The position numbers and the translations under genes were made by a program. From contig NC_068988.1 of assembly GCF_001194135.2 (NCBI RefSeq), forward strand, positions 13,390,581-13,454,580: DNA of 64,000 nucleotides, in the 5' to 3' direction. The notes under the pieces are model-generated. The model was not told the DNA's origin. It did no database searches and was given only the letters and a program-made list of their open reading frames with translations. The stretch comes from Octopus bimaculoides (taxonomy: Eukaryota). Shown in pieces: positions 206 through 60,660 of the stretch. Each line of letters opens with the position of its first letter. Position 1 is the stretch's first letter.

Positions 206-351
206 TCTGATGGGTACATGCGAACTTCCTCGATCCTTCCAAGAAAGGAAAACAAGGTTTTCATTTGTTCTTTAATTGCTCCAGGTGCTACATTTGTAAC
301 TTGAATGACTTTTGTATTGAGTTTACAATCAGCAACCGCTGTACCAGCCAT
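206..351 (-). CDS. SREK1: First coding exon of an SR-related splicing factor (SREK1/SRSF11/SRp54 family, RRM1 N-terminus); gene continues beyond the left edge
   Basis: ATG at 351-349 reads MAGTAVADCKLNTKVIQVTNVAPGAIKEQMKTLFSFLGRIEEVRMYPS, then a GA|GTAAGT donor at 205. VIQVTN..EQMxTLFSFLGxIEExRxYP is the N-terminal RRM signature I recall for SREK1/SRSF11/Srp54. Choosing SREK1 over SRSF11 rests partly on synteny. Confidence 0.88.
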
Positions 352-386
352 GGTTGTGCACAAAATTTGTGCAAACGGATTGCCGG

Positions 387-430
387 CAAAATGGTGATTG
401 TTTATAGGCGGAAGTGACGTCACCGGAAAT
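387..430 (-). promoter_or_regulatory. SREK1 core promoter: overlapping ETS-CRE motif, second ETS-like site, TATA-like and YY1-like elements
   Basis: GCGGAAGTGACGTCAC at 408-423 and CCGGAAAT at 423-430. TATAAA on the minus strand at 406-401. AAAATGG at 388-394. All lie 35-80 nt upstream of the ATG. Confidence 0.7.
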
Positions 431-999
431 TACAGCGTTTAATATATTTCCTCAGCATATGTTCAACTTCTGCATAATTTAAAATGTGGTTCGAATAACC
501 AGCTAACTTTTTACTTAACATTCTTAAATTACTAAAACTAAATCCTTTATTCTTAAAATTAAAAGTAATAAAAGGTGGCTTTAGATTTCACTGACAACTA
601 GAATTGTTATTTTAAAAATAATTTATTCGGCGCCATTCTTTTTATTTTAGTTAAATTTGTAAGCTGGTTGTGATAGTTTTAAAATATATGTTCCATTTGT
701 TAACTCGATGAAAATTAAAGTGAAATACTGAAAAGTATCGATCTTAAAATTTTCCAATATCATCGAATTACTTGTCAATAATCCATCCTATCTTGCTCTT
801 CTTATTTATTTCTATCATTGACACCAGAACTCAAATTTTGGCGGAGGATGCAGTCGATTTAATCTATCCTAGTTGTTGACTGGTACGTTTTAAAAAAATC
901 TTTTCTCTTTTATTAAGTTTTTTTTTCTTATTTATTGATTTATGGCAAAAATGAATGTCATTCCTATAATTAATATATATACATCAATATCACTTTGAC

Positions 1000-1502
1000 T
1001 TTGACTATTGCTCTCAGCTATGGTCACCAACCAGTGTCAAATTAATCTCAGAACTTGAGGCAATCCAACGAAGCTACACGAAGAAGATAGCCTCTATGCA
1101 GCATATAAGCTATTGGGAAAGACTCAACAGATTAAGACTCTATTCCTTAGAGCGTAGACGAGAAAGATATGCCATAATATACACCTGGAAGAACCTCGAA
1201 GATATTGTCCAAAATTTTGACATCGAAAGTTACACAAATAAAAGAACTGGACGCCATTGCATAGTGCCAAGGACTCCAAATTTGCCATCAAGATGTAGGA
1301 CAAGATACTGCAATAGCCTGGGCTTCAAAGGTCCACAGCTCTTCAATATCCTCCCGAAGGACCTGAGAGACCTGCATGCGGTGGATGTAGGTGTCTTCAA
1401 GACAAGGCTGGACCTCTTCCTGTCAGGTGTCCCAGATGAACCAACTTCACGGCAGGAGGCGCAGATGAGAGCAGCTGCATCAAACTCTCTCATGCACCAA
1501 AT
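1000..1502 (+). mobile_element. 5'-truncated CR1/L2-group LINE, RT C-terminal fragment (runs into N gap)
   Basis: Open frame DYCSQLWSPTSVKLISELEAIQR...YWERLNRLRLYSLERRRER...FNILPKDLR...FKTRLDLFL, typical of the CR1-type ORF2 C-terminus. Confidence 0.85.
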
Positions 1503-2699
1503 NNNNNNNNNNNNNNNNNNNNNNNNNNNNNNNNNNNNNNNNNNNNNNNNNNNNNNNNNNNNNNNNNNNNNNNNNNNNNNNNNNNNNNNNNNNNNNNNNN
1601 NNNNNNNNNNNNNNNNNNNNNNNNNNNNNNNNNNNNNNNNNNNNNNNNNNNNNNNNNNNNNNNNNNNNNNNNNNNNNNNNNNNNNNNNNNNNNNNNNNNN
1701 NNNNNNNNNNNNNNNNNNNNNNNNNNNNNNNNNNNNNNNNNNNNNNNNNNNNNNNNNNNNNNNNNNNNNNNNNNNNNNNNNNNNNNNNNNNNNNNNNNNN
1801 NNNNNNNNNNNNNNNNNNNNNNNNNNNNNNNNNNNNNNNNNNNNNNNNNNNNNNNNNNNNNNNNNNNNNNNNNNNNNNNNNNNTTTGATATTGACAAATC
1901 AAAAAGCAGAAAAATAAAAAGTTGAGATTGGCTTTTTCAAAGAGATTTTAGTGTGTGAAGAGGGAAAGATTTGGTTCAATTAGAATTTGCTTCAGTTCAG
2001 TGACACTTGTTTCCTCCACGTACTTCAATATCGGAATAGGAAGAAAGGTATTATACAATATTGAACTGGTTATGTTCTAATTTTATATCTGCTAGTTGGT
2101 ATTTAATAAAATTGAACTGTGTAGGGATAGTTTAATGAACTGAGTATACTCTTACATTATTTTCGTGCTATTCTCCAAGGTGAGGGAAAATCTGAGATAT
2201 TGGCGACTAATAATACCGATTGTTTTGACTAAGTACAAAATTATGCTTGTAGGGGATAAAAGATAGTATGCCGAATGAATTTAGTAAAACATCTAGTCTA
2301 GCTTACTATTATCTGCAGCAGATCTTTAACTCAAATCGCTGATCAATCTTCTGTGATTAAATAAATATCCATCTGTGGATCACCAAAACTTGTAGCGTAA
2401 GATGGCTGTAGATGCAACCAACATCGTTGTCTTTCCTGATCAGCTTACCTTATGTTTTCATCTTTCTCCTAATCTATCCATTGACCGTGTTCAATAATCC
2501 CCTTGGTGGATCCCCTATATCTCTTTTACTGGAATTTTTTTCCATACATTACAATATTCTCTAAAAGTGAAATGTTATGATGTCGTGTTGCATCATCAAA
2601 TTATTCTATTTTTCGTATTTTAACAATTAACGAAAGAGTTTCGGGATTCTCGGTATTCTCAACAATTTATTTCCTAACATTTTCCTTACTTCAATGTTC

Positions 2700-3270
2700 G
2701 GATCTTTTTTAAAACGGGGGCCACATTTTTCATTAATGTTTTACGTAGTGTTTTTGGTACGGAAAGACTTTCAAACTTCGTATACTTATCTATTTTGTGT
2801 TATAGAACAGAAAAATATTTTTGTATTCGAATTTATTTCATGTAAAAAATTGTCTTATTTCGATAATTTCAACCAATCACTGACAAGTATTCAGTTGTTT
2901 ATATTTACTCCTTTGGCTGATTAAGCCATAGCTTCGTTTTATTTGCTTTTTTCATTTTCTTTTTTTTCTTCGTTTTATTTGCTTTTTTCTTTTTAAATTT
3001 GCTGTTTTACCCTAACCCTATCACCGATAGAATTGTTTCAGAATCGTTTGTTTATGTAGTCGGCACTTAATGTATATCGGCTGAATGGACGTCAGTGATT
3101 GGTTGAAATTACAGAAATACGACAACTTTAACATGGAATAACTTATGGATTTCTTTTTTTTTTAAGAAGACTAAGAGAAAAAGATGTTTTATATGACACA
3201 TTCTACCAGTGTTCCAAGTTTCAAAGTGTTTCGTTAATGAAAAATGTGGCCCCCGTTTTAAAAAAGATCC
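2700..3270. mobile_element. Non-autonomous DNA transposon with perfect 37-bp TIRs and 8-bp TSD
   Basis: TIR GGATCTTTTTTAAAACGGGGGCCACATTTTTCATTAA at 2700-2736, exact reverse complement at 3234-3270. CAATGTTC is duplicated at 2692-2699 and 3271-3278. Confidence 0.92.
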
Positions 3271-4170
3271 CAATGTTCAACATATGAAATGGAAAATATC
3301 ATTCTACATTACCTTTCAAAAATCATGAACTTTCCTTACGTTCAGCATCTAACGCCCGTGATACGTTCAGCAACCAACGTCCCTAATTCGCACTCATATA
3401 ATGCATTTGGATAATTTTAAAAGTATAAGTTAGTTAGAGAAGGTACAGCGCCCTTTATGTTCCTGGACCCTCTTTGTCAAATGAGATAAATGCAGTTGAT
3501 AATCAGTTTGAAATTATGTAATGGAGAAATCCCCAACAGCACACACTACAACGGAACAGTTTAACACGATACTTTTAACCCACGAGATAAAAATCAAGTG
3601 GTTTTGTTGTCACCCTCTTCGCCATCTCAAATGAGTACAAAACATTTTAAAACTGCTCCCACCACCACTATTTTTTCCCCTTTTTCTTTTTTTTCTTTTT
3701 TTGCTTTCTTTCACGATCAATGGCATACTTATGTGCATGTACAAGAACATTACTTTCACAGAAGTTAGTTAAGATGAAAGTCCACGTGTGAATGACGTAG
3801 AATTGTAAGTTAGAAGTACAGAAAACTGTACTGGTAGGAGGAAGAGAAAGGGAATAAAGTTTATGAAAGAAATGCTGGAAGTGAGCGCAATTAATCAGTA
3901 ATTGGCTAAGTCAGAGAGGTTGCTCTTTTGGAAGGGGTGCTATTAGGACACACTGTAACATGTTCCACTAGCTTTGAATAGATCCTTGGAGATTTTGGTG
4001 AAGATAGAAACTTACCATGGAACGTGCTTTTGCGGGGAGAGTTAAGGTATTCGCTTTTGACACTGCAATAAATTAACGATGAATGCCAAAATAGATTGAG
4101 ACCATTTAAGTATCATGGTAGATTTTAGTTGTCTTTTCCCGAAGCATAGGAGTACTTGAATTCAGCACTA

Positions 4171-4372
4171 TCTTATATATAAATGGCAATTTCTGTCTGT
4201 CTGTTACCATTATAGTTCCTAAACCAGCGAACCAATATTCACGAAACTTTGCATACACGTTACACTAACAATAATAGGCTAATTGGATTTCAATAAAAAT
4301 TTATAATGTCCCCCCCCCCACTGGGGTTGAGCGAATTATATGATAAAATAAGAAGGTTGCAAAAACTATTAG
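4171..4372 (+). mobile_element. Possible short Helitron-like element
   Basis: Starts A|TCTTATATATAAA followed by (TGTC)n. There is a C/G-rich subterminal hairpin candidate. The end is TTAG|T rather than canonical CTAG|T. Confidence 0.3.
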
Positions 4373-4989
4373 TCGGAGGGAAACGCAGTAGCAGAGTGAA
4401 GGTGACTTATATCAGGGAAGGTGAGAACAGCGTTATGTAAGCTACAAATATTGAGTAGCAATGGGACGTCCGCGTTAATACAGCTGTCATATACATGCGA
4501 CGCTACATACTTTCGTAAATACATAGATACAACACACAGAGAGAAAGGTGGGTGTGAGGAATACATAGCATTAAAGAGAGAGGCGATAGGTGACTTTTCT
4601 GATATCCATCGTAAAGAAACACTCACACACAGACACACACAGTACATACATACATGTCTACTAAACACCATTTAAAACTCAGATTACCTGTGTATACGTT
4701 TGTAAATGTGTGTGTATGTGTAAGAGAGAGAGAGAGAGAGGTCCTATAACTGTCTGTCTGTCTACTTTTGTAGGGTCTTCCCTGTTGCTATCACATATTG
4801 TGAGATTTTAGAATTACGTTAAAATTTCCAAATTTGGTATATTGAAATAATTTTCCACGTTAAATCCAATTTTGTTATTTAGTTGTTCCAGAAAAATTGC
4901 AGAAAAATGTTACTGAGGTTTAAAGTTTACCTAATCGGAAAACTTCCGAAGTTTTAATGAATAAAGTCATGTGAAACGATCAAATAGAC

Positions 4990-5617
4990 ATGTGTGTTTA
5001 TATATATATATATATATGGTGTGTGTATGTGTATGCATATATATATTTGTTGTCTGTATGTGTGTGTGTGTGTGTGTACAGTGTGAAATGTGTGTCAGTG
5101 TGGTTTTGACCCAGTAGTGGTCAGGTGACATTGTTAGGGTGGAGTGGTTGGTGGCGGTGGTGGTGGTGGTGGGATTGACAGTGTTGTTGCTGCTGTTGTT
5201 GATGAGGGTGAAGTCGTCGGGGACGAAGGGTGGGGGTGTGTGGGGGATCGAGTACGGAGGAGGTGACAGTCTTCTATTGTTAAACTCAACAACCAGACGA
5301 TCTCCTCCTCCCCCAACTACCATCATTTTCCTCTTCTTCCTTTCTTCTTCTTCTTCTTCTTCTTCTTCCTCCTCCTTTCTTCTCCTTCATCTTCTTCATC
5401 TCAGAGAGGATATATCCCCATAATAAGTATTACAGCTCCTTTACCCTAATTAGGCATTTCTCTGGCCTCTTGTTCTCGAGGTCAATGTACTCTTCTGTGT
5501 CTTCTACTACTACTTCNNNNNNNNNNNNNNNNNNNNNNNNNNNNNNNNNNNNNNNNNNNNNNNNNNNNNNNNNNNNNNNNNNNNNNNNNNNNNNNNNNNN
5601 NNNNNNNNNNNNNNNNN

Positions 5618-5672
<55 letters not shown>
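4990..5672. repeat. Microsatellite/low-complexity cluster: (TA)n, (TG)n, (GGT)n, (TCT)n, (CT)n around an N gap
   Basis: Read directly from the sequence. Confidence 0.85.
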
Positions 5673-5673
<1 letters not shown>

Positions 5674-5876
5674 AGGAAAAAAATCCCCAACAAGTTTTTT
5701 TTTGTGAAAAATTGCACAAATCTGCCCTGATCAAGAGACCTATCTGTCGGGGAAGGCATGGTCTGACATAGAATAAGCAGAAATTTATATAAGACATTCT
5801 ATTGTAAAAATTGCCTGGCAACGACGGGCTATTCAGCTCATTCCAGCAGCATAGGGTACCGAATACCTATTCGTGG

Positions 5877-6000
5877 CACTAGCGTAGCTAGAGGGGACAG
5901 TCCACCCCACCACTTTTGGGTCTGCTGTAAGCAATATGTATTTGGGGGACGGAAAACTGATGGGCCGCCCCAAGCGGCACACACTCTAACTACGCTAGTG
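5877..6000. mobile_element. 124-bp hAT-like MITE
   Basis: TIR CACTAGCGTAGCTAGAG / CTCTAACTACGCTAGTG (16/17 match). 8-bp TSD ATTCGTGG at 5869-5876 and 6001-6008. Confidence 0.88.
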
Positions 6001-7349
6001 ATTCGTGGTATCTTTCTACTGTAACACTCATCGCACATTATTGTAATTTTTGCTATTTTACCCAGTATAACATGTAATGTAATAAAATTAACGCAACGCT
6101 CTTATTTAACACAGAAGTTTTTAGTTTTGCAAAACTTTTTACTTTTATCATGAGGTCGCCCGAGAAACCTTCTTGACCCTTCCAAGAACATTTTTCATTG
6201 TTGTTTATCCCAAGACATCTCTGATCTGGCAGACTTATGAAGAAATACATTACAGCTACAACCATGCTATTTTTTTTTTTTTGTTTCAGAGACCGTCTGT
6301 ATGTTTCTTTTTATAAAGACGGTAGGAGTGATTCGCAGTAAATGAGATTGCTATTTCAAGTACACCGAGCGTCCATATACAGGCTTCCTATCTTGCTCGA
6401 AACATATTTGTCTCTAGCGATAAGGTTCCAACTGGGAACTAAAACCATTCAATATTTCCATGGTGACTATGCATGTTGATTATTTTGTTTTGCGCTCGTC
6501 TAATTCTAAACCACACAGAATTGTTTCGCTTTTCGCTTAACAGCTAACAATTTCGCGTTTTTTACACTTTCTTTTCTTTTCCGCTTTCGCTTGACGTGCA
6601 CTTCTCATAGCCACAGAGCCCTCTTTGCGTTCGACCTGCTAGAAATAACAGCCAACTATCCGCTAACGAATGGTATTAAAAGATCTAATCAATTTAACTT
6701 TGTCTTTTCTTACAAATATATTTATAAGAAACTAGAAACAAGTATTTTATTGAAATACCTTTTTAACATTTGTAAACAAGATTGAAATAAGCAAATTTTG
6801 TTGTGTCTAGGGAGAGTCATTATGCCAATATTAATAATACACGCACGGGTTTAATTCCACTTCTTTATCATCTGAGGGCGACTAAATCCCATCGTGCCCC
6901 TTGTTACCGATCTGGTGCGTGAATGGAGGTTGCACAATACTAGGTAACCGCGAGGAGTAGAGGCCATTGTAATTGTAGAACAGAGAGAGGAGACAACATA
7001 TCAGTGAACCAGAGGTTGGAGCATGCAATAATAATGCTCTTGCAATAAAACTTTGAAACAAATGAAGGCAATGTTATAGCAAATAAAATTTTTAAAAAAT
7101 GGAAGAAATATTGTTTGTATACAGAAAGAAGTTGTGCTTGTCCATCACTAACTAGGCTCATATCTGTAATTTGTAGCAAATCAAAGCACTTGTAGGCATC
7201 AGTAATTTATAACTTCCGATCATATAAATGTTTAAATTTTTATTTCGATCATTCTTCTAAATGTTAATTAGTTGTTTCTGCAATTTATTTGTTTCCATCT
7301 TATAAATACTTGAAAAAATAGAAAAAAAAATGAATCGCTCGACTTTTTC

Positions 7350-7810
7350 TAGCGTTCTAACCTTCCTTAGTGAGCACCAGATCTACAGGAGACCTATTCT
7401 ATTACTCACCAGCGGGCTCTCGCCTTTGAGAGATTTAGTGAAAGTTTCACCAAATCTCTCCAACTGGCATGCGAAAATAGTCAAAACTCCTTGTAATTGG
7501 GATCCACCTGCATATAGTCCCTTGGATTAGTGAGTTCCTGTTATTTTACTACTGTGGCATGTGCTAATGGAACTTCTCTCTCTGACCGACAACCCTTTCA
7601 GCTTTGGTGTTGTGTGTCCTGGAGTTCGGTTTTGATTCACGACACTCTTCCTCCTATATATCAACAACCTACTTGTAGTCACAACACCCACACCTAAACG
7701 AATGATATTCTACTTCATTCCTCTCTAGTCTCCGACAACCAAATGTCATCCACAGACACCTCGCGAAATCTGCGCTGACTCTCAACGGGGACCTCGAACA
7801 CATCTTTTAA
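7350..7810 (+). mobile_element. Decayed LINE reverse transcriptase fragment
   Basis: Broken frames include QIYRR...SGLSPLRDL and a degenerate GVPQGSVLGPTLFLLYINDL-like motif (..TLFLLYINNL at about 7640-7670). Confidence 0.6.
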
Positions 7811-9239
7811 TGATGGGGGAAGGGTCTTTTTTTTTTTTTTTAAGATAATAGGGTATGATTCGGGGTAGATTTATCTGTTTTTTTCCAGCAAGTCGGACAA
7901 TCGCATATACTGTGATTGTGTTTTTCTGTTTTCAAACTGGTACCCAAGTGTGAAAAGTGGACTTGTTTTGGTGAAAAGCGACACGCTCCAAAATCGAAAC
8001 TGTACTATCGCCTATTTTTCTGTAAATTGATTGATTGATTTAATGACTACTGATACTTGTAATATCAACTCGAAAATGAGTAAAAAGCAGAAGTTAACTC
8101 CTCCGGTGGGTACTGATCATGATACAATACTGAATTCGGTCCGATAAGTACTAACCTTCAAAATATATGTAGCATAATGTATCTACAGACTTATTTACAC
8201 CAGGGGCCCTACTATTTCAAAATACAAATATATCTCGTTTGAAATAAATTTGGAAAATTTTAAAGTGTTCTTTGAGTCTAAATAATTCTTAGTTGTGATA
8301 TTGTAGTCCTTGAAGTTCTGGTCGATAGGGCCTAAAACCAAGTCTCCTAATGAGACTGTCTTGACTTTTCTTTTTGGTGTTTTGTAGCAGTAAAGTATCT
8401 AAGATTACATTATCAGGTGTACCGTGTTTTAAGACGTTAGGTAGAATTTGAGAGAAAACTGGCTGATATTTCTAGCATGTCGCACAATGTTGAGACCTTC
8501 ATGTTATGCGGATCATTGGGTTATCCTTTCTTTTATTTTTATAGCTTATTCGGAGGAGAAAGGGTAATGCCCATGTTTTTCAGGACTTCAAAAACAATAG
8601 CACAGACTTGGTTTATAAACTTACAACAGAGGGTGAACTCTCTTAGTTTAATACTACAAGGTGGTAGTATTAAACTGGGTAACGATTAAATCGACTACTT
8701 AAATCATGCACGGTCATTTCGACGGGCCTTCTGTACAGTTTCCATCGCCCGAATTTCAACCACAAAGCTTCGGTCGATTTGAGGCTATGGTAAAAGACAC
8801 ATGCCAAAAATACCGCGAAGACCGATTGAACCTGAAACTATTGCGCCTCACCCTTCAAAATGAGACGGGTGTAATAAAAAAACATTTCCCGCGCCTTTTA
8901 AATCAAAATCCCAACTATTTATACGTGATTAATTGTTCTTTATGTTTACTAATGATAATTATATATGCATCTACACCCATAAATATATATTAGTGAAGTG
9001 AGACGGAGTTCATTGCCTGAGACTACCTCATTCAATAAGATTCTAAGTGGATACTCTCCACCAGATGGCGTTCCACTTATAACTCTAAAAGTGGCGGTTT
9101 ACGGTACCACGCGTCATAGTTAATTAGCAAATTCTTTAAGCCTGTTTTTAGTAAGTATTAACCAATTTTTATTTTATTTAATCGGTTGTAAATATAGATT
9201 TGTTTAAATTCATTTTTAATGTTTAATAATCTCGAGGCA

Positions 9240-9324
9240 GAAACTACGTCAGAGGAAGTCGTAAAAAAGAATTTTTCGAATTGCTTTGTGGCGCTCTGCT
9301 GGCATAGGACTGTAGCTTGTAAGT
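9240..9324 (+). promoter_or_regulatory. Putative SGT promoter and short non-coding first exon with donor at 9319
   Basis: ACGTCA (9246-9251) and GGAAGT (9254-9259), CpG-rich context, CTT|GTAAGT donor at 9319. The first coding exon (acceptor 10590) has only 15 nt before the ATG, so an upstream exon is required. Confidence 0.55.
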
Positions 9325-9528
9325 TGTGAGTCGATTTTTTATTTATTTTATGGACCTTCTTCAACATAACTTTAAGGGGATCTTCATATTTCTGTTGTAT
9401 AATGTTTATATTGAGTATTTTTCGAAAAATATTTCATATTGAGATATTTTAACTATATAACTTTTCTCGTAAGTTTATTGATAGCAGCTGTAGTTCCAAA
9501 TCCTGTTACATCAGTGAATATTTATATA

Positions 9529-9572
<44 letters not shown>

Positions 9573-9917
9573 GATGTATATATGTTCGTGTTGTATACTG
9601 NNNNNNNNNNNNNNNNNNNNNNNNNNNNNNNNNNNNNNNNNNNNNNNNNNNNNNNNNNNNNNNNNNNNNNNNNNNNNNNNNNNNNNNNNNNNNNNNNNNN
9701 NNNNNNNNNNNNNNNNNNNNNNNNNNNNNNNNNNNNNNNNNNNNNNNNNNNNNNNNNNNNNTGTTATAAATATATCCTTGCAAGCTTGGAGTTTCTTACG
9801 CTTATTTAATAAGATGTCGATATTATGACGGGGTGTGTGTAGTTTATTTCCTCTTTATCAAAGAACGACACCATTTCAAGATTACTCCAGTTTTCTCGTG
9901 TTAACAAAGATTGTATA

Positions 9918-9959
<42 letters not shown>

Positions 9960-10605
9960 CGTCTTAGCCTAACTTTGTAATCCTGTTAACTTTCTGATGA
10001 TGGAAATATGAAAATATATAAACAGTTATGTTAACAATGTTATCATTACTATTTATATTTTCTCAGTATGACTAGGTGTTTAGCCAGCTAGTCTAATATT
10101 ATGTATGTATTTATATTTATGTCTTGAGTTTCGTCTGTTGAGACATTTTTTCAGAACTGCAGTAATGTGATCGGAAAGAAGTAACTGATACCTTCAACTT
10201 TAATGGTTAGTTACCATCCTTAAAAAAATAAGAAAAGAAGAAAAATACCCTAAGTTTTATTTTAGTAGTTACTAATGTAACATGAGAAAAGCCTTCTTAG
10301 TTTCATGTTGAATTATGCCTCCCAAAATGCAGAACGCTCTGCCAATAAATATTAGGAAACTTCAGTCCGTATCGGACTTTTGCATAGAAAACCAAACTTT
10401 TCTATTTACGAAGCCCAAATTAATTAAATTTCCCCCACACTATGTTGTGTGATCAATATACTCAGATCGAATTCCTAGACTAGGTGACAGCTGCATACTC
10501 TAAGTGTTTTTTTGTTTTTCTTCCTCGTCCAGTTTGGAATTATTTTTCTTAATTTATAATGATTAATTTTATTTTTTTATTTATTTCTAGTTACTTTTGA
10601 ATAAA

Positions 10606-10994
10606 ATGGCTGATGTCTCGAAGCTTGTATATTCCATTCTGAAATTTCTTGGTGATCAAAAAACCTCAGGAAACTTAAGTGATGATGCTGTGGAAAGCCT
10701 GGAAGGTAAGTGTATCTTCTATTTATAATTCTTTCACGTCTTGAAATTAACTACTGGAGTTCGGTTTACATCTAATCTGGTTTCTTTCTTTCTTTGTTTT
10801 TTGTCTAGTTTCAGTCGTTGAATGAAAAAAGATCTGATAATTTTAATGGTAAATTTTGATGCCGTCTTTGCATACAACAGTATTTAAATTATTTTTATCT
10901 TGGAAACTATTTCAAACGAATTTTTCTTTACAAAAATTGGGCAGGAATTTTTTTAGACAATATACTACAAGTCCCTAATCTAGACAATTTAAAG

Positions 10995-11025
<31 letters not shown>

Positions 11026-11822: not shown

Positions 11823-11856
<34 letters not shown>

Positions 11857-12083
11857 NNNNNNNNNNNNNNNNNNNNNNNNNNNNNNNNNNNNNNNNNNNN
11901 NNNNNNNNNNNNNNNNNNNNNNNNNNNNNNNNNNNNNNNNNNNNNNNNNNNNNNNNNNNNNNNNNNNNNNNNNNNNNNNNNNNNNNNNNNNNNNNNNNNN
12001 NNNNNNNNNNNNNNNNNNNNNNNNNNNNNNNNNNNNNNNNNNNNNNNNNNNNNNNNNCAAATATTTGCTGATCCCTTAATTAT

Positions 12084-12122
<39 letters not shown>

Positions 12123-40600: not shown

Positions 40601-40779
40601 NNNNNNNNNNNNNNNNNNNNNNNNNNNNNNNNNNNNNNNNNNNNNNNNNNNNNNNTGTAGAAACTCTGCCAAATTAGACTGGAGCCTGGTGTTGCCATCC
40701 GGTTTCACCAGTCCTCAGTCAAATCGTCCAACCCATGCTAGCATGGAAAGCGGACGTTAAACGATGATGATGATGATGA

Positions 40780-40821
<42 letters not shown>

Positions 40822-49616: not shown

Positions 49617-49648
<32 letters not shown>

Positions 49649-49876
49649 CAAATGGTTAAGAAGTTCACTTTGCAGTCATATGGTCCTGGGTCCAATCCAT
49701 TTGCATGGCATTTTGAGTAGATGCCACTTTTTCTAGTGTTGGGTAGACCCATACCTTGTAAATAAAATTGGAGTGACAGAAACTGGATAGAAGACCATTG
49801 TGTAGAGTGCAACTCTAATTTAAAAGGTATAGCCATGTCAGATTTTATGTCATGCTTTTTACACCTAATAATTATG

Positions 49877-49919
<43 letters not shown>

Positions 49920-52900
49920 ACTACCTTTTAGCCGCTATTGTTCCCAGGTCTATGCTGACTGGAAGTAGTAGCACCTGTCAGGGCTCCCACTACAGGTTAA
50001 CTAGCATATATGATAATAATCCATCTGAGTGCAGGGATGCAGATATACCTTTGGTTAGTGACAGAAAGCACAGTAAAACCGATGGGAGTGAGGGAACCCC
50101 AGCTATGACAACAGATAAGAGAGGGACACTCTGATGTAAAATCGCATGACTACTGGTCATCTTGATTCAGCCTGTCACTAGATACTAACCACAGAGGCTC
50201 AGAGAGTGGTATGCGTGTTGTGCAAGTGTTTGTCACTATAATCCAGTGATGTACAGATGGTTCTTTATGGTGACCTCATTTGTCATTTCATCCACTGAAA
50301 GTCCAATGTCAATAGAAAGGTAGTGATGTGTGCAGGCCTAATCAGTTGGAAGCATACATATAAGTTACAGCTTTCATCTGTCACTTATGCTTTAAACAAT
50401 ACATATCTACAGCAGGACTGAATAGTCATCTGAGAGGTCATGGATGGGAAGCCAGAAATGCCATTGGCAATGAGAAAGCATAAAGAGATAACAATCATCA
50501 GTGAAGGTGGAGCAACCACCATATAAATATATCATCATCATTTTAGCATCCACTTTTCCATGCTTTCATGGGTCAGACAAAATTTCTCAAGAGAAAATTT
50601 TGTATGGTTGGATGACTTATTTGACATGAGAGGGAAAGAAGTCCATTACTGATGATTGAGAAGATATTAAGTAAAAGTGTGTTTACTGATTTTAAATCTG
50701 ATAATGATGATTTTTATTAGCTATAAGTGTTCCCATGATCCTCTGTAGCCTGCTACAAAGAGCACAAACATTCTGCTGATGAGACTGATCAAAGTCTTGA
50801 AATTTTTATGGGTTAATAGATTTAGAAATGCTATTGTTCTAAACTAAACATTAAGGACTAATAAGGAAATATGAAAACTCTTAATAATAAAAAAAGATTA
50901 AAATTGAATAGAGTTGTGGCTCTAATATAACAGGTTTAAAAGAAAATCTGTTCATTATTTTTACTCTCACAGTTGTGTGTGTGTGTGTGTGTGTGTGTGT
51001 ACATATATAATAGGAGCAGGCATGGCTGTGTGGTAAGAAGTTTGCTTCTCAGCTACATGGTTTTGGGTTCAGTCCCACTGCATGGCACCTTGGGCAAGTG
51101 TTTTCTACTATAGCCTTGAGCTGACCAAAGGTTTGTGAGTGGATATGGTATATGGAAACTGAAAGAAGCCCATCAGGTATATATATATATATATNNNNNN
51201 NNNNNNNNNNNNNNNNNNNNNNNNNNNNNNNNNNNNNNNNNNNNNNNNNNNNNNNNNNNNNNNNNNNNNNNNNNNNNNNNNNNNNNNNNNNNNNNNNNNN
51301 NNNNNNNNNNNNNNNNNNNNNNNNNNNNNNNNNNNNNNNNNNNTATATATATATATATTAGCCTGCTAACCTAGCCAGCAGGGTGGTGTCATTTGAAGGT
51401 TAAAACAATGCAAAAACGCATTGTGACCAACGATGTGTAACAACATCTGGCAGCCTGGTTGGTCATGTGATATCTATCTATCTATATATGAATGTATGTG
51501 TGCATGGGCATGTGTAATACTCTCTCCTTGAATTGACATCATGTGATAGTTGTCATGCAAGCAGTGACTTTTGCTTCCAATCTTCCATGAAAATGTGTCT
51601 GGCCATGAAGAAATGTTACCTTACTTGGAAGCAAGTGAATGTTGGTGACAGGAAGGGCATCCAGCCATAGAAAGACTGCATCAGCAAATTCTGTCTGACC
51701 CATGCAAGCATGGGAAAGTGGGTGTTGAAATGATGATGACAATGATGATGATACATGTGCATACACACCAACACATATACATATATATCTTTCACTTGTT
51801 TCAGTCATTAAGTTGGAACAAGTAATAGTAACCATTCAAGAGAGTGCCGGAATACTGCCTTGAACATCTTTACTTCTTTTCTTATTCATAATAAATCCAG
51901 TACCTACTTTTTAAAAAGTCTGGTACTTAATTTAGCAATATATATTTATCACACTGCTAAATTACAGGACATAAGCAGACAGCAATAAACACATACAAAC
52001 ATAGACACAGGCACACATACCTATGTGGTCAAGCCACTCAAAGTCATAAATCTGAATGTTAGCGCATTTAATTTATAACTGAATCCAACAAGATCTTTGC
52101 ATTTTGCCTGAAGAATCCTTGGTAGTAAACATCACAGTTTTAGGTTTGTTAGGAACAGCACAAGTAGTTCCAAACAAGCCTATGAGTAGCTAATCTATGT
52201 ACTGGGACTCACAGTTAGGGATTAAATATATAAATTTTATTTTGAGAGAGAGAGAGAGAGAGAGAGATGTCTAAGTTAAGAATTAAATAAACAAGATCTC
52301 CAAAATTGTCTGAAAAGAGATTCTCTCTCCTCTGATGACATATTTCCCTGCCAAGGGGCNNNNNNNNNNCCCCCCCCCCCCTCCCTTCCCCAACACACAC
52401 ATGTATCAGACTCTTTAGTTCATGATGATTTTAGTTTACAAACACATATTGCAAAAGTCATGTGCAACAACTGAGCAATGAAATGTAAATTCAAAGATAA
52501 AGCTTTATAACATAAACATTAACATCCTGTCTGTTCTTTTCATAAAGCAAATTATAATTACTATAAATTGTGATAACTAGTTTTTACAAAAAATTTTAAG
52601 TGTTATGGTTTTTAAGTATTATTTTCATGTTAAATACATTAATCCATGTTAATTAAATTCAGTCTCTTATGAAAAATTTGCTTCCTTTGAAATTCTTTTC
52701 TAATTCATAACAAATGAATGGCACTGATAGCATTTCCTTTTCTCTGTGTAATCCATTCAATAAATGATGGTCTTTTTTTAACCTCATATTAAACCAATAT
52801 CACTACATAATGAGAAAAGTTCCTAAAATTATTTTAAAATTAACACAGCATTTATTATATGTGATCTATTTATAGCCAGTTGGCCATCTGACTTGATTTT

Positions 52901-55824
52901 GGTGATTATTAAACAAAAGATGACAAACTGAACATTTAAGTATGAGACGGATGAAATTCTTTGAAATTTAGACAACCCTGGTTTTGCGGGGAGAAAAGCG
53001 ATAATTGTAGTGTTAATAGGTTTTCTAGAATTATATTCTAAGTAAATGATGTATTATCAGACTCAGTAATTTGTAAGTTTATTATTTAATTTAAAATTAC
53101 TTCAAGCTATAGCTAGGTTCATTTTGGATAGAATGTGATTTTTTTTTGCTTTTACACAATATTTTAAGATTGATGTTTAAAGCAAAAATGTTAGACAAGA
53201 GTCCTTGTTGTTGATGTGTGAGTTAGTGTTTGATGTCACTGTTATCTGTGATGTGCTTTGGTCACTGCTAATGCTCTTGACACTGTTAATTATTTTTACC
53301 TACTCGTATTCTCTTTGTTTCAAGATATAGAGTAAATGCAAATAGCAAGACAGATTTCTATTTCTATTTTCTACATCAGGTCTTGTTTTAGTTTGCTTTG
53401 CATTTTAACGTTTCTGCTGCCATTGCACCCTCTCCTATCTCCTATAGCCACCAATATAAAAGTACATGACTTAGGTCACTAAGTACTCTCTATACACTTA
53501 CACACTTGTTCCTTTTACATACCAATTGTGGCCTTTCTGCCATCATAGTACTCTCGCTTTAGCAGAGATGGCATTGGTTTGTGAGCCCCTTTAGAATAGT
53601 CCTTTTAAGGACTTAACTCTCTAGGATTGTTGCCACAAGAAAACACACCTAGTGCAATCTGTAAAGCTGTTGGCAATAGGAAAGGTATTCATCCATAGAA
53701 ACTAAACCAAATGGTACATTTGACCACTAATCTATGAGAGCAATGACTCCCAATCAGAAATGACTTGAACTGTGATGGCCCATCTAACCTATGCTAGCAT
53801 GGGAAATGGACATAAATTGATGATGATGAGACAAAAGAAAGATTTCTACAGAATGAAATGAAAGATTGACTGTAATATAATTGATTACTTTGAACAAATT
53901 GGATAGGGGCACTGCTAACCAAAAGAAATAAAAGTCTTTTCAAGGTTTTATAATTATAACATGTCAAATATTTTAATTTTAGATTTCAGTATCAATGAAA
54001 AATCGAATAAGAAATATAGGCCAGTTCCCCACCATTTACATCTACAACTTTACTGTAATTAAGTTAATACTAATAATAATGAACATTGAAATAATTAAAA
54101 ATATTGCAAAATTCAAAATGGAAATGAAAAAAAGTCCATATTTTTCCTTCCATTTTCTTTCTTTCTCTCATTTTTTTTTCCAATTAAAAAATATATTTAG
54201 ACATTCAACTCCATTATTTAATAGCAGTAGTTTAAATATGAAAAGTTATTTTTAGACCAAAGTATGAGACCATGACAAGAATTAAAAGATCAATGTTTTA
54301 CTGGCCGTTTTACCCCATTTGAAATCATTCCCCTCTACTCTTTCTAATGTGTTTATTGTCTCATGACAGTTATGCATAATAAAACAAATTCAGTTAAGTT
54401 TAATTTTCTCTGATCCTCATTTAGCATAAATCTATTTTTAGAAACTAATAACTTTTATCTTTATAATTTGCTCTCTCTTTCACCACTTAAAACTATATGC
54501 TTCATTGCACACTATTTCCCCACCTTCAGCACATGGACATCAGATTAAACTGTTCTTTCTGTGTAAGTACAGAAGGGAAAAAAGAAAATTCCATTTAAAC
54601 CAAGATTAATAATGTGCATCTAAAGCCAAGCATTAAAAAAACATGTAAAAAGTGTCAATTAGTGACCAGGTTTGGCTGTTGGCCAATGGAAAGGAATCCA
54701 ACACATAACAACCACCACCACCACCACCACCACCACTGCATCTGGTTGTCATTAAGTATTTATTGCTGCTTCCCCCTGGACATAACATTACTTCTGAGAT
54801 TATGCTTCAGTGTGGTGGCAATCTGTTGTTGATTATCTTTTTGAAAATAAATACTATCAATTAGCACAGAGAGAGAGAGAGGCTGTTAACATTAATTGAT
54901 TCATCAATGTTTGTTTTATACTAATGGAGCTTTAATATTTATGTATTTTATATTGCATTTTGTGAACAATAGTATCATTGGTCAAGTTTATGAGGGGCCA
55001 ATCATTGGTTCATGACATTTTCAATAGCAAGAGTGACAAGGAAGTTATCTGAGCAACTTGTGCAGAATAAATACCACAATATTATTTTTTGTTTGAAAGC
55101 AGCAGTTTATCAGATTTCTCACCAATGTCCACACCCTTTGCTGCTGTATATTGTTTAAATATATACATATTCATGCACACACACACAGCACATTCACATA
55201 TACAGTAGGATTCCATACAGTTTACAAGTTGCTCAGATAACTTCCTTGTCACTCTTGCTATTGAAAATGTCATGAATCAGTGATTGGCCTCTCATAAACT
55301 TAACCAACGATACTATTGCTCACAAAAAATGCAATATAAAATACATAAATATTAAAGCACCGTTAGTATAAAACAAACAATGATGAATCAATTCTATATA
55401 GTTTACATATATAACATTCCACTCTCATATTAGTTGGACAGTAAGAGGCTATTGTAGAAGACACATGCCCATAGTGTAATACAGTGAGATTGAATATGGA
55501 ACAACAATAAAGTGAATTTGGTAGATAAAATCTGCCTGAAGTTATGTATGTGTCCATCCATGCCTGTTTTTATGTTTAACACTGGTCAAAAAAAGGAAAT
55601 GCTGATGTTATTTATGCTGTGTCCCTTTACATCTTATAAACTAGTGGATTGATAAAATAAGTACTGGGCTATAGGCATGGCTGTGAGGTTAAAAGTTTGC
55701 TCCCAAACCACATGGTTTCAAGTTCAGTCACACTGTATGACACCTTGGGTAGGTGTCTTCTACTACGGCCCCAGGACAATCAAAGCTTTGTGAGTGGATT
55801 CAGTAGATGAAAACTGAAAGATGC

Positions 55825-55866
<42 letters not shown>

Positions 55867-58800
55867 AAAATGAAAAATAATAATAAGACAGAATGCTAAA
55901 CTGGACGCGTATTTTAATAAAGATTTCTAACCGGCTTTCATTGCAGAGCAAATTTTCAAGAAGAGGGAAAATGAAAATGTTTTTTACAAAGAAGTACAAA
56001 ATGAATAAAATAATATATAAAAAAATAAATATACCAATACATTATATTGTCTTTGAGCTTTTGAAGTTCAATGGTAATTCATGTATATAATGGTTGGAAA
56101 AATAAGGATGCATGAGAATTGAGAGTTGTGTTAGGTTTAGAAAAAGGGTTAAAAGTTTGTGTTAAGCAGGAAGTATGGTGTCAAAACAGGAAGTGTGTGT
56201 AAGAGGAGACAAATGTTTTTAGTTGGAGTTATGAACTCTTTTTCAACAGGAAGAAAGATGTAAAATCAAAGAAACAAGATAAATTCACAGTATGCTTGAG
56301 AGAGAGAGAAAGAGAGAGAGGTGGGGAATTAATGCAGTTAATCATTTTAATAGTTTGAAGTAAGTAATTAGAATATATAAAGAGGCAAATCAAATAAGAT
56401 ATTGGTGTATTGATTTTTCAGACAATTGAACAGAAATAGTAAATTACAATTATGCTCAGAAGATACAGTTTCATTAAATTTATCCACATAGTGATTATGG
56501 GCAACAAGATTTTCTAAAACAACAACCTATGTATCAACATGAATTTCCTCTTGTAGGAAAGGAAATAATATAAATGGCTAAAGATGTACATTTGATAAAA
56601 AAAAGACTGGGAGCAAGGGATAACAAAAAANNNNNNNNNNGGGGGGGGGGGGCAAAAAAAAACATTTGAAGAAATTGTTTTTTTTCTGCCCTGAGGAAGA
56701 AGGGCAGCAACAAATAGAATACGTATGCTCTGCAAAACATGAACAGGGAGTGTATTCCATATGGTTGTGGTTTTGGTGAAGAAGGATTAGAAAAAGCATT
56801 TAGAGAAGGTCTCTGGTCTGAGAATAACTTATACATATCCAGGTAAGAGGTGAGTGACAAGGAAGACAGAATCTATGCAAGCACAGAAATTAGCTTTTGG
56901 AATGAAGTTAGAACTCTCTGGACAGCAGAGATTGATTGAAGACAGGGATTAAGAAATTTGTATCATGGAGAGGAATAGGATATATGATCTGCATTTGAGT
57001 AAGAGATGTTGAGTGCGATCTAAGTTGGAACAAAATCCATGGATAATTGGCGAAGAGGAGGGAGATTGTCCAAAGGGTTTATTTATTTATTTATTTTCAT
57101 TTTGGGGACAAGTAGACGGTGAAAGTGTATTAATTTCTTCCTCTGTTTCCCTGCTACAAGTCTCAGAGGTTATTCAAAAAGAAATGGTGAAGGGCTCTGT
57201 ATTCCATACCATGACTCAGAACAAAAAAAAACAACAAAAAAACCCCACAACAGAATAAGAAGGGGATAATTAAAAGAAAAAGATAGGTATATCAAAGTGT
57301 CAAAAGAAACATGGGATGTTTCAAGAAGCAGATGAGATTGTAGGAGTAGTAATTGTAGAAGAGACATAGGAAAAGTCCTAGATGTCAGTGGAGTAGTGGT
57401 TAGGGTAGATTGGTAAGTGAAGGTTGCTTATCTGTCAATGGGTCTTTATTTTGGATGCGGAAGGTAATAGTGGAAAGTGGTGGTGTTGGTGATGATGAAG
57501 AAATTGTATTTTTAATACTAAATTACAATGAAATAGAATAAATTATAAATATAATTTCACTGTATTTAAGAGCCCAGGGATTCATTTATCTCAATCATAT
57601 CATTTTCTTGTATGAATGATTCTAACTTTATTTTATCTCTTTCAGGGAATTTATGAAAAATATATACAGCAAATAAGATGCAACAAATTTGATTAAATCC
57701 CGAAACACATATGGCTGCCTCAAAGCATTTGATGTTCTGTATGGTGATAACCTTACTGCAAATTATTGAATGGAAATAGCGTTCATAGCTGTTAATAAAT
57801 GTGTAATTGAATGCAGCCACAAATACTAATTAAAGACTACAGACACTTATCCTTGCAATATCTGTAGATATTCCAGCATAATATTTCAATAGGTTAGCAG
57901 AGCACTCTTTACTGAATATTAAAACAAGATAGATTAAAAAAAAAAACCCATGTAGATATCATGCATAAATGTGAGATATAAGAGAGAAAGATAAATAAAA
58001 TTAGAGGCAGAGATTTCAAAAATGATAGTGAAAATATTTTTTGTTTTGGTAGGGAAGAATGAAATTAGTGAAGTGTGGAAAGCAAAAGCTATTGTAGTAA
58101 CAGAAGAGATAATATGTAAAAATTGTTGGTTAGAGTTTGCATTTCTTTAGATACTGTCTAGTTATCAAGGAGTTTGAACAGTGTCATAACAGTAGTCTAT
58201 AGTTAGGTGTATCTATATTTTGTAAAGAAAGTATGTTCAGTGATGAAGTTCTTTATCTCTAAAGAGTGAAGAATTGTTCTCTATATGAAATGATGTTATT
58301 TTCGTTGTACTATTTTCTGTACTGAGTAGTGAATAAATGTCAACATATTTCCTATGTTTATACAATTATAAGTTTTCAGACTATTAAGTTCATCATTAGG
58401 GACGACATATCTAATATTCACATCTACTACTACTATAACAAAAACATATCAATCCTTTGAACTCCACTGTTGCTCTTCTAATATAATGTAGTTCTATCAT
58501 GCATGGCATAAAAAGTTCTTTCACAGTTGGAGGCACATCATTCCACCTGGTTTAATATCACCATCTAACCCATGGTTGCCTTTACTGGAGATCCAGCCTA
58601 ATTCTAGAAAAAAAAGGGAAACCCTCTGGACAATTTTTCCTCCTCTAGTTATTCCATGGATTTTGTTTCAACTCAAATCTCACTTATTTCTTTGTTACAT
58701 GCAAACTCACATCCTATTACTCTCCAAGGCACAGATCTTTCAACTCCATCACTGCTGTCCTGACAAGAATTTCTATTAGATTCCATTCTCCCCGCCATTC

Positions 58801-60660
58801 AACTGGTTATCAACAATAATAGCTTCTAGCCACTCTGACCCAAAGCCTCCCTCCCACAATCCCCAAAATACATCTGTTCTTTCTATTGCTCTCCTAACTC
58901 CTTAAACTACCAGCTTCTCTTCAACTATGTCTCCTCAGTTGAGGTCATATATCTCAATCCCTCACCAAAGCCAGTGACTTCAGTGTTCATTAGTGGCTCT
59001 CTCACTTAATTCACATTGATGTGAAGAAGCAGATAAGAAGATTCGCCAAAGTTATTTGGATGCATTTAGTAAGTGACAGAACTGAATGGGAAAATAAAAC
59101 ATTACAAATCTTTTAAGATTCCAAAGGAGAGATTAGAAAACATTCCCTGAATTTATTTCACATGAGAGATGCCATAAAAGGAAACAGATGATACAGAAGA
59201 AAACACTTACTTCAGCATTATAAAATTTTGTCTTAACATCAAGGGGTTTCAAGACCTGTAAAAAAAAAACATTTAGAGAGTCAAAGCTAAAATCAATACC
59301 TCAATCACATGGATGATATTAAAAAAAAGTAAATAAAAATTGAAGAGAAGTAGAGGTTAAAATATTTTCATATTTATTTTTAATTCTATTGAAAAAATAA
59401 TATCATCCTGGAGGAGCTTTCTACTTTCACTATAGTTGGTAATGTCTTAAGAAAAGGTAGAAATCTCATGACTTATTTTTCTTCCTAAAATTCTGATGAA
59501 TCTTATTTCTTTTTTGACATTTAAATGTCTTTGATTCGTATTTCTTCAAATCTACCTTGTCACACAAACAACACAGAAACTCCACTCATTGAAGCAGCCT
59601 AGCATGAATTCTGCCTGAGTGACTAAGATATCTACTAACACAATAATAAATTAATAATAATAAAACAATAACAAAAACAATGCACTGTTTAATGAAAAAA
59701 ACTGATAAGATAGTGGAAAAAGTACTCTATTATTAAGATATTTTCTGAATGAATTGGAACCTTAGTTTTGAAACTAAGTATTTTATTGTTTTTATATGGG
59801 ATGTGTTCAAAGTTATGTTAGCACCTTAAAATTTATAAAAGATTTTATCAGAAGATTTTACCAAATTCTTAAACTGCCTATTTTTCATTTTGTTTTCTCT
59901 ATATCAGTGGTAAAAGTCTATAAAAAAGAATCTGATTTTTCCAAAATAATAAATGATGTTCTTCACATAAGGCCCCACTGCACAAAACTGATTTGTATTG
60001 TTCACCATTTTCACTTACTGACATAGCATTACATTGAAGGTAACTGCCTAGCAACTCATTTAATAAACACAGGTAATATTATATCAGATGGTTGCATACA
60101 AGCCATTGTGCTAATATACTTTAACATTTAAGACTGCAAAAAGTATGTAAACAATTTGATATTGTCACATGAAAGGGAATAGACTTTCCATAATCATAAC
60201 ACATATCTGAGTACTTTTGCTTATCACTTGACATCTCAGATTTCAATTTCATTTAATAGACTGTATCTAACATACAAAAAAATGTGCTTTCTTTTACTTG
60301 ACAATATTGGCAATTGTTTGCCAGTGTTTTTCATAAAGAGTTAATAAACTATATCAAATTCCACTGTGTTGTTTGTATGAAATGTCTTCATAATAACAAT
60401 GTTTGACAATATCAAATGGTTTTACCTACATTTTCATCATAAACTGGAGATCTATATTTATACGATTGCCCTATTTATTACACGAGATGTCTTAAAAACA
60501 ATGAGTGCTTACAAGAATATGAAAAACATGTGATATTTTTATGACCTAGCTAATCAGAAAAGATTAGCTTTACTTATAAAAACTCACCTGAAATTTGAAG
60601 AACTTGCGGAAAGCCATTTTATCACCAGATTCCGTGACATAACTAACTGCACACACCAGA
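34632..60660 (-). CDS. TRAPPC13: Trafficking protein particle complex subunit 13, last 7 coding exons (263 aa); 5' exons lie beyond the right edge
   Basis: Exons 60660-60588 ([24 protein letters not shown]), 59255-59211 ([15 protein letters not shown]), 41228-41098 ([14 protein letters not shown]...), 36565-36364 (..[34 protein letters not shown]), 35361-35261 ([13 protein letters not shown]), 34960-34807 ([22 protein letters not shown]), 34718-34632 ([28 protein letters not shown]). All introns are GT-AG with matching phases, and the motifs match TRAPPC13 as I recall it. Confidence 0.95.
36676..36785. mobile_element. 110-bp Tc1/mariner-type MITE (TA-flanked)
   Basis: TA+CGAGGGGTGTATGAGAAGTCTTGAGCCT versus the reverse complement of the right end, TA+CGAGGGCTGTATGAAAAGTTTTGAGCCT (27/30). 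Confidence 0.85.
39135..39356. mobile_element. Older mariner-type MITE
   Basis: Right TIR (reverse complement) TACGAGGAGGTACTGAAAAGTTCTTGGCTTT; the left copy is degenerate (about 20/29 match). Confidence 0.6.
39875..40783 (+). mobile_element. 5'-truncated RTE LINE spanning an N gap
   Basis: [42 protein letters not shown] before the gap. After the gap is the RTE 3' end with (GAT)n tail, nearly identical to 21304-21430. Confidence 0.8.
41392..41620 (+). mobile_element. tRNA-derived SINE with Meta-domain-like core
   Basis: GCTGGCAGAATCGTTAG...GAGTTCAAATTC head, then GCCGAGGTTGGCTATGCCTTTCATCCTTTTGGGGTC...AATAAGTACCAG. Confidence 0.7.
41964..43149. repeat. Near-perfect 280-bp inverted repeat with 626-nt spacer
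   Basis: Arms 41964-42243 and 42870-43149; I found two mismatches by eye, both transitions. Confidence 0.92.
46372..46852. mobile_element. Two adjacent TTAA-flanked piggyBac-like MITEs in opposite orientation
   Basis: Copy A 46372-46591 has TTAA|CCCTTTAGCATT...AATGCTAAAGGG|TTAA. Copy B 46632-46852 is a diverged reverse-complement copy, also TTAA-flanked. Confidence 0.85.
46870..47170 (+). mobile_element. CR1-like LINE 3' end with (ATT)n tail
   Basis: Frame ..[27 protein letters not shown] resembles the CR1 ORF2 end, followed by a 3' UTR and (ATT)n. Confidence 0.6.
48751..49035. repeat. Degenerate ~60-bp minisatellite, about 5 units
   Basis: Recurring AGAATAAA...CAACTAGAGGCAATTTAATGCTTGAT...TAGGTAA units. 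Confidence 0.7.
49920..50520 (+). mobile_element. Decayed RTE/RTEX-like LINE 3' region
   Basis: Broken frame ending [19 protein letters not shown] (C2H2-like tail). Confidence 0.5.
54894..55393. repeat. ~170-bp inverted repeat with ~160-nt spacer
   Basis: Arms 54894-55061 and 55224-55393, roughly 93-95% identical, differences mostly transitions. No TSD seen. Confidence 0.88.

Follow-up and report, generated by a model that had tools for sequence, protein, structure and literature searches.

The window considered here is a 64,000-bp stretch of the Octopus bimaculoides genome that holds three unrelated housekeeping genes in direct succession: a splicing-factor gene of the SRSF11/SREK1 family on the minus strand (a pro-orthologue of both, called SREK1-like below), the co-chaperone gene SGT on the plus strand, and TRAPPC13, again on the minus strand. 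The first two genes diverge and the last two converge. Genes were located by tblastn with probe proteins and then with database proteins, and the resulting models bear out a preliminary description of this DNA, which had read three consecutive genes on these strands and stop codons about 1.08 kb apart for the convergent pair. For two of the three genes, SREK1-like and TRAPPC13, the window contains only fragments.

SGT (small glutamine-rich TPR co-chaperone) is present with its complete coding sequence (10606..33548, plus strand), for which an exact spliced reconstruction gives 11 exons, all with GT-AG boundaries, at 10606-10705, 14165-14283, 19713-19794, 20246-20345, 24801-24905, 25351-25489, 27364-27444, 29450-29487, 30708-30776, 32582-32685 and 33526-33548, with the stop codon at 33546-33548. 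The 319-aa product matches O. bimaculoides XP_014784137 (P0121) over residues 7-325 at 100% identity. It combines an N-terminal SGTA dimerisation domain, three TPRs and a Gln/Met-rich C terminus (Pfam SGTA_dimer, 3.8e-16; TPR_1, 1.4e-25; also TPR_2 and TPR_11), and the gene is therefore a member of the SGTA/SGTB co-chaperone family, whose names its homologues carry.

TRAPPC13, which encodes a TRAPPIII subunit, is represented by its last seven coding exons (aa 139-401; 34632..60660, minus strand), spliced from 60660-60588, 59255-59211, 41228-41098, 36565-36364, 35361-35261, 34960-34807 and 34718-34632, with the stop codon at 34632-34634. This part has 0 mismatches to the Octopus sinensis protein (P0001). 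Residues 1-138 gave no tblastn or peptide match anywhere in the window; the intron that precedes residue 139 (60661..64000, minus strand) runs off the right edge, and the exons for these residues lie past base 64000. Pfam recognises TRAPPC13_M (2.4e-54) and TRAPPC13_C (3e-40), and of the N domain only the last 25 residues are in the window. With these domains and 97% identity to the O. sinensis protein the gene belongs to the TRAPPC13 family.

The two convergent genes are separated, stop codon to stop codon, by a spacer of 1,083 bp (33549..34631) that is free of N gaps. When Octopus is aligned to the corresponding Argonauta locus the introns are unalignable, and matches are confined to the exons, a small number of dispersed repeats and two stretches of non-coding DNA. 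One of these stretches is the inter-stop region itself, which is conserved end to end: window positions 33502-34973 fall in one 1,506-bp Argonauta match at 74% identity, with conserved blocks all along it that include the poly(A) motifs of both genes. AATAAA occurs on the plus strand at 33706 and 33738 and on the minus strand at 34595, 34574 and 34528. Most of the spacer is probably made up of the 3' untranslated regions (UTRs) of SGT and TRAPPC13. The observed/expected CpG ratio points the same way, at 0.19 in the inter-stop spacer, 0.19 in the TRAPPC13 body, 0.28 in the SGT body and 0.77 in the head-to-head spacer. For invertebrates whose gene bodies are methylated, a ratio as low as that of the gene bodies suggests that the inter-stop DNA lies within a transcribed, historically methylated block. 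The sharp contrast between 0.77 in the head-to-head spacer and 0.19-0.28 from SGT to TRAPPC13 would fit continuous germline gene-body methylation over both units.

The SREK1-like gene enters the window with coding exon 1 alone (206..351, minus strand; ATG at 351-349, last exon base 206, GTAAGT donor at 205-200), which encodes the start of RRM1, and its remainder lies off the left edge. The 48 codons are 100% identical to residues 1-48 of XP_014784128 (P0242), annotated as 'serine/arginine-rich splicing factor 11 isoform X5 [Octopus bimaculoides]'. An exhaustive representative search retrieved the full octopus protein; a query with the 49-aa exon-1 peptide had returned one match only. That match, a 49-aa 'protein' from a Logan contig (P0241), is 88% identical and also ends in ...RMYPSE-stop. 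It is an intron read-through call from genomic contigs of another cephalopod, and its termination at the same point indicates that the GTAAGT donor of exon 1 is conserved. A putative SREK1-like core promoter, proposed from its motifs, lies at 392..432 (minus strand). It combines a palindromic ETS-CRE-ETS motif, TTCCGGTGACGTCACTTCCG, read at 405-430, with a TATA-like box some 45 bp before the start codon.

The preliminary description had called this a SREK1-family gene on the minus strand, and we agree on family and strand. The full-length octopus protein (619 aa) has two RRMs, arginine/serine-rich regions and a C-terminal DYDEEEKGY...MDMDMSD tail. It thus has both the second RRM that persists in SREK1 and the DYDEEE...MDMSD tail that persists in SRSF11. 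Compared with human reference sequences, one of which proved 99% identical to a database protein, it scores 290 bits to SREK1 and 162 bits to SRSF11; the higher SREK1 score arises because SREK1 retains the second RRM, the C-terminal tail being that of SRSF11. Neighbour-joining pairs vertebrate SREK1 with vertebrate SRSF11 as sister groups (97% bootstrap) inside the deuterostomes (98%) and puts the octopus protein among those of other molluscs. Because the two vertebrate proteins form one clade within the deuterostomes, the tree places the octopus gene as a single pre-duplication relative that is co-orthologous to both. We therefore rejected strict SREK1 orthology, which would require the gene to cluster with vertebrate SREK1 and apart from SRSF11. 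The opposite concern, that it might prove to be the SRSF11 orthologue, is ill-posed for a gene that, by this tree, predates the duplication. Invertebrate members of the family are publicly named 'SRSF11-like' and 'SREK1-like' in alternation.

Between the SREK1-like and SGT start codons lie 10,254 bp (352..10605) containing a retroelement-like open reading frame (ORF), microsatellites and three N gaps. A Pfam scan of the ten longest clean ORFs in this spacer gave no match, and nothing resembling NLN or ERBIN was seen in the ORF list or the Pfam scans, as the preliminary description had also found. The second non-coding stretch that aligns to Argonauta is here, a 425-bp block at 9058..9482 (plus strand; 71% identity over 449 bp to positions 8556-8991 of the Argonauta locus) that sits 1.1-1.5 kb upstream of the SGT start and whose flanks cannot be aligned. 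It carries ACGTCA/GGAAGT-type motifs followed by GTAAGT, and is probably the SGT promoter together with a non-coding first exon that ends in the GTAAGT donor. Since this block is about 8.7 kb from the putative SREK1-like promoter, the two putative promoters are separate in octopus, whereas in scallop they would fall within 1.5 kb of each other. The only promoter motifs common to the octopus, chiton and scallop spacers are generic ETS-type ones, with no alignable element. The octopus pair thus has the divergent orientation of a bidirectional-promoter pair (minus-strand SREK1-like exon 1 facing away from plus-strand SGT), but start codons 10,254 bp apart are far from the spacing of less than about 1 kb between transcription starts that defines such pairs. 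The scallop pair may still fall within that distance.

Gene order was then compared among other animals by inspecting the coding range and up to 10 kb on either side, with strands taken from tblastn. SGT and TRAPPC13 are convergent in Argonauta (973 bp between coding ranges), in the chiton Liolophura (5,353 bp) and in the hemichordate Ptychodera flava (5,796 bp), and the chiton and Ptychodera spacers contain no notable ORF. SREK1-like and SGT are divergent in the chiton, where 3,554 bp separate SGT from an upstream RRM gene identified by tblastn with the octopus protein, and in the scallop Pecten maximus, where the distance is 1,514 bp from ATG to ATG. All three genes of Liolophura therefore follow one another and are oriented as in octopus, and wherever either pair was found by tblastn (Argonauta, chiton, Ptychodera, Pecten) its relative orientation is identical. 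In Ptychodera, a ClpP protease gene stands head-to-head with SGT in the place of the SREK1-like gene (L006 1-7489). If human CLPP and SGTA are both on 19p13.3, as we take them to be, this arrangement would be consistent with a chromosome-scale linkage of long standing.

Softer support comes from database records. TRAPPC13 and SGT have consecutive RefSeq accessions in the independent assembly of O. sinensis, SGT and TRAPPC13 share one 3.6 Mb scaffold in cuttlefish, and in Littorina the SGT and SREK1-like accessions are near-consecutive, with TRAPPC13 27 numbers off. Accession spacing is an unreliable proxy for adjacency, however: the numbers run on consecutively in O. bimaculoides, O. sinensis and Ptychodera, yet those of the adjacent chiton genes differ by 408.

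For the human locus at 5q12.3 we assume the order TRIM23-TRAPPC13-SGTB-NLN-ERBIN-SREK1, with TRAPPC13 and SGTB convergent and SREK1 divergent from SGTB. The preliminary description had drawn the same parallel, and the proximity of SGTB, TRAPPC13 and TRIM23 is documented, leaving the strands and the NLN/ERBIN/SREK1 order as our assumption. A 204 kb human interval at chr5:65.50-65.71 Mb contains CENPK, PPWD1, TRIM23, TRAPPC13, SHLD3 and SGTB (PMC11061283), and in buffalo SGTB, TRAPPC13 and TRIM23 all lie within +/-20 kb of one single-nucleotide polymorphism (PMC10725422).

On this distribution, the trio appears to be at least as old as the last common ancestor of chitons and cephalopods, and the parsimonious reading is that the convergent SGT/TRAPPC13 pair dates to the protostome-deuterostome ancestor. 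The proposal that the linkage descends from the bilaterian ancestor thus holds for SGT/TRAPPC13, as judged from Octopus, Argonauta, the chiton and Ptychodera, and the trio itself can be followed back at least to the chiton-cephalopod ancestor. That the linkage outlasted the rearrangement of coleoid genomes is borne out as well: the convergent pair has the same form in Octopus and Argonauta as in the chiton and Ptychodera, and Octopus keeps the trio.

With moderate confidence, we favour the view that this is an inherited neighbourhood retained through short, functionally dense spacers under weak, lineage-dependent constraint. Persistence would follow if both spacers are, or ancestrally were, short and filled with functional DNA. 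On the head-to-head side this would probably have been an ancestrally shared or closely abutting promoter region, now 1.5 kb from ATG to ATG in scallop and, through the insertion of repeats, about 10 kb in octopus, and on the tail-to-tail side the octopod spacer would be occupied by 3' UTR sequence. Breakpoints within such spacers would be rare, as the target is small, and harmful, as a promoter or UTR would be severed, and the pairs would decay slowly. This matches the 'coregulation/short spacer' class of conserved pairs that Irimia et al. describe. The alignment of the inter-stop spacer and of the 425-bp block upstream of SGT between Octopus and Argonauta, where introns do not align, supports this view.

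Several observations weigh against it. About half of the sampled lineages are without the SGT/TRAPPC13 adjacency: TRAPPC13 is not beside SGT in Lottia gigantea, in the oyster Crassostrea angulata or in the amphioxus Branchiostoma belcheri, where two LRR genes are found there instead, and in Priapulus and Pecten the 10 kb flanking SGT do not contain it. Selection therefore cannot be strong. Nor are the spacers uniformly short: the stop-to-stop distance reaches 5.3-5.8 kb in the chiton and Ptychodera, and the head-to-head spacer of octopus is about 10 kb long. In addition, the UTR and promoter readings draw solely on motifs, conservation and CpG content, and the human gene orientations are as we presume them to be. 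The preliminary description had anticipated that the linkage might be lacking in intermediate taxa, and this proves true of Lottia, oyster and amphioxus but not of the chiton, Ptychodera and Argonauta, which keep the convergent pair. The constraint that it took to be implied must accordingly be weak and dependent on lineage: about half of the lineages do without the adjacency, the octopus head-to-head spacer has absorbed about 9 kb of repeats, and the 3' ends in the chiton and acorn worm are more than 5 kb apart. Because several lineages do without the linkage, no element within it is indispensable, and we regard the linkage as ancestral but dispensable.

Some of the loci without the adjacency have features of their own. 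Lottia TRAPPC13 is a single uninterrupted ORF of 1,224 bp (L002 10001-11224) located between SRP68 and a p25-alpha gene, whereas the gene has many introns in other animals. It has the appearance of a retrocopy that took the place of its parent, and such a replacement would explain the lost linkage with SGT. In C. angulata, the 44-kb TRAPPC13 gene has an SBF (sodium/bile-acid cotransporter family) gene nested in an intron on the opposite strand (L004 19508-27378). In Pecten, a short-unit tandem satellite of more than 3 kb begins 6.7 kb downstream of SGT and continues to the end of the flank (L007 22881-26181), and TRAPPC13 could lie just past it.

A serious rival is that the linkage was inherited without any selective constraint, as a chance survivor of neutral gene-order decay among genes with small breakpoint targets on one ancestral chromosome. 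The patchy distribution is what such decay would leave, as is the finding that the genes, where they are not adjacent, are usually still on the same chromosome (Pomacea, with locus tags about 200 apart, Haliotis, Mya, Gigantopelta and oysters). Tolerance of the repeat insertions in the octopus head-to-head spacer fits as well, and hundreds of such pairs are known (PMC3514665). Against neutral survival stand the conservation of the Octopus/Argonauta inter-stop spacer next to unconserved introns, the single orientation seen in all positive lineages, and the joint retention of two adjacent pairs by chiton and octopus. On balance, we consider this explanation possible but somewhat unlikely.

A more specific proposal, raised in part by the preliminary description, is that a shared 3'-end element or overlapping convergent transcripts hold SGT and TRAPPC13 together and make their expression interdependent. 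The close convergent 3' ends in Octopus (1,083 bp) and Argonauta (973 bp) have the form of a convergent-transcript pair, the whole octopod spacer is conserved and as CpG-depleted as transcribed DNA, and distal AATAAA/ATTAAA motifs would carry each transcript into the 3' UTR of the other gene. We also presume that the 3' ends of human TRAPPC13 and SGTB abut or overlap. However, proximal poly(A) motifs on both strands would keep the transcripts apart, so that the motif positions permit overlapping and non-overlapping ends alike. The stop-to-stop distances in the chiton and acorn worm make a universal shared 3'-end signal unlikely, and a constraint of that kind is therefore not general. Moreover, the pair has been split in several healthy lineages, in Lottia through retrocopy replacement of TRAPPC13. 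Thus, we judge this explanation improbable.

We give slightly less credence still to the bolder form of this idea, in which SGT/TRAPPC13 would be a functional convergent unit more than 500 million years old whose overlapping 3' UTRs or shared termination/poly(A) signals allow mutual tuning. A functional convergent-transcript unit may exist in octopods and mammals. If true, it would couple a cytosolic factor for the triage of tail-anchored proteins to a TRAPPIII subunit of trafficking and autophagy, and the pair would be among the oldest known convergent (3'-3') regulatory gene pairs.

It is very unlikely that the same neighbours were assembled independently in molluscs and deuterostomes. A shared ancestral chromosome for all three genes does raise the odds of accidental adjacency, and a post hoc observation from a single window invites selection bias. 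Nevertheless, the same convergent pair occurs in four lineages (cephalopods, chiton, hemichordate and mammals, the mammalian orientation being as we assume it). Under free shuffling along an ancestral chromosome that carries a few hundred orthologues, any one pair should be adjacent in less than 1% of cases per lineage, and repeated accidental adjacency would have a probability of about 1e-6 or less, which is a rough estimate and not a genome-wide one.

The window has 34.5% G+C, an overall CpG observed/expected ratio of 0.34 and 11 N gaps, all of which are intronic or intergenic and none of which has cost an exon. Four are in SGT introns (11857-12057, 19549-19558, 21608-22155 and 23148-23579) and four in TRAPPC13 introns (40005-40655, 51195-51343, 52360-52369 and 56631-56640); none of these eight disturbs the collinear order of the exons or interrupts the SGT coding sequence. 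The gap flanks are mostly microsatellites or homopolymers, the usual cause of gaps in short-read assemblies. In the head-to-head spacer, the gap at 9601-9761 is spanned by collinear Argonauta alignments (1,088 bp in the window and 972 bp in Argonauta), and no alignment spans those at 1503-1883 and 5517-5617. The joins at the latter two are supported indirectly: the same adjacency is found in chiton and scallop, both flanking genes are on one 97.8 Mb O. bimaculoides chromosome, and the three genes have RefSeq accessions from a single series (XP_014784128, ...132-135, ...137/140). A scaffold mis-joined at an N gap, which the preliminary description had feared and which would mean that the genes are not true neighbours, is the least credible explanation of all and we reject it, since, for all these gaps and the two unspanned ones between the SREK1-like exon and SGT, the inter-stop DNA is gap-free, exons are collinear and complete over every intragenic gap, most gaps sit at simple repeats, and the same adjacencies recur in Argonauta, O. 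sinensis, chiton and scallop.

Other features of the window are minor. Rfam and tRNA scans of its whole length gave no matches. Three ORFs are retroelement remnants (1096-1502, plus strand; 14588-15316 and 22280-22603, minus strand); the ORF at 22280-22603 has a reverse-transcriptase Pfam match, and among the remnants are also one ORF with a weak DUF6451 match and one that resembles the tail of a long interspersed nuclear element and is interrupted by an N gap. Two families of short dispersed repeats (18074-18200, 19473-19541 and 21303-21455; and 22777-22873, 24052-24136, 33070-33162 and 39679-39760) are also present in many copies at the Argonauta locus (e.g. 2485-2581 of L001), and may be elements common to octopods that resemble short interspersed nuclear elements.

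Among known systems, the human locus at 5q12.3 is alike in that SGTB and TRAPPC13 are neighbours. It presumably differs in that NLN and ERBIN intervene between SGTB and SREK1, so that NLN is the head-to-head partner of SGTB, and we take human SRSF11 (1p31) and SGTA (19p13.3) to be elsewhere. It also has SREK1 where octopus has a gene co-orthologous to SREK1 and SRSF11. TRIM23-TRAPPC13, which we presume to be head-to-head at human 5q12.3, is a second old adjacency of TRAPPC13: amphioxus has a TRIM23-type gene (RING/B-box/Arf) head-to-head with TRAPPC13 (L003 1-25934), TRIM23 is near TRAPPC13 in mammals, and the pair is absent from the oyster and Lottia look-ups. In octopus it would fall outside the window, as TRAPPC13 continues past the right edge with its 5' part. 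We rejected a genomic regulatory block, another arrangement that the preliminary description had suggested, as there is no developmental gene here and the Octopus-Argonauta alignment reveals no conserved intronic elements.

A further likeness is to the ancestral blocks that outlasted coleoid genome reorganisation. The squid Euprymna has retained 275 metazoan microsyntenic blocks, and such blocks show an enrichment of signalling and developmental roles (Schmidbaur et al. 2022, PMC9023564); the octopus trio differs in consisting of housekeeping genes, and its genes are not named in the supplements of that study. Literature searches that paired these gene names with synteny or microsynteny likewise found no paper that names the block, which may still sit in unlabelled lists.

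The arrangement also resembles conserved ancestral microsyntenic pairs (CAMPs; Irimia et al. 2012, PMC3514665), unrelated neighbours kept adjacent across phyla, such as HSPE1-HSPD1. The 595 described are enriched for 5'-5' orientation and short spacers, and are defined by adjacency common to at least four major metazoan lineages (PMC3514665). In octopus, the genes of both pairs are non-paralogous and directly adjacent, with no Pfam-bearing ORF in either spacer, and the constant relative orientation is supporting though not required. SGT/TRAPPC13 adjacency is found by tblastn in Mollusca (Octopus, Argonauta and chiton) and Hemichordata, and is taken to extend to Vertebrata from published intervals and our assumed gene order; SREK1-like/SGT adjacency is shown within Mollusca only. 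SREK1-like/SGT fits the main class of CAMPs in being a divergent housekeeping pair with a short spacer. In contrast, SGT/TRAPPC13 has the minority 3'-3' orientation, for which it is uncommon (15-25% in that study) that orientation is fully conserved, and is absent from Lottia and amphioxus, two key slow-evolving genomes of that study (PMC3514665).

Conserved metazoan microsynteny is a known and well-documented class, and the octopus trio adds an example not named in the literature we found. It reveals neither a new mechanism nor a new type of element. Its value is as a concrete and easily checked addition to the ancient gene neighbourhoods of animals, with a divergent and a convergent housekeeping pair united in one trio, and its patchy loss, including the TRAPPC13 retrocopy of Lottia, offers a small natural experiment for distinguishing neighbourhoods that are selected from those that merely decay slowly.

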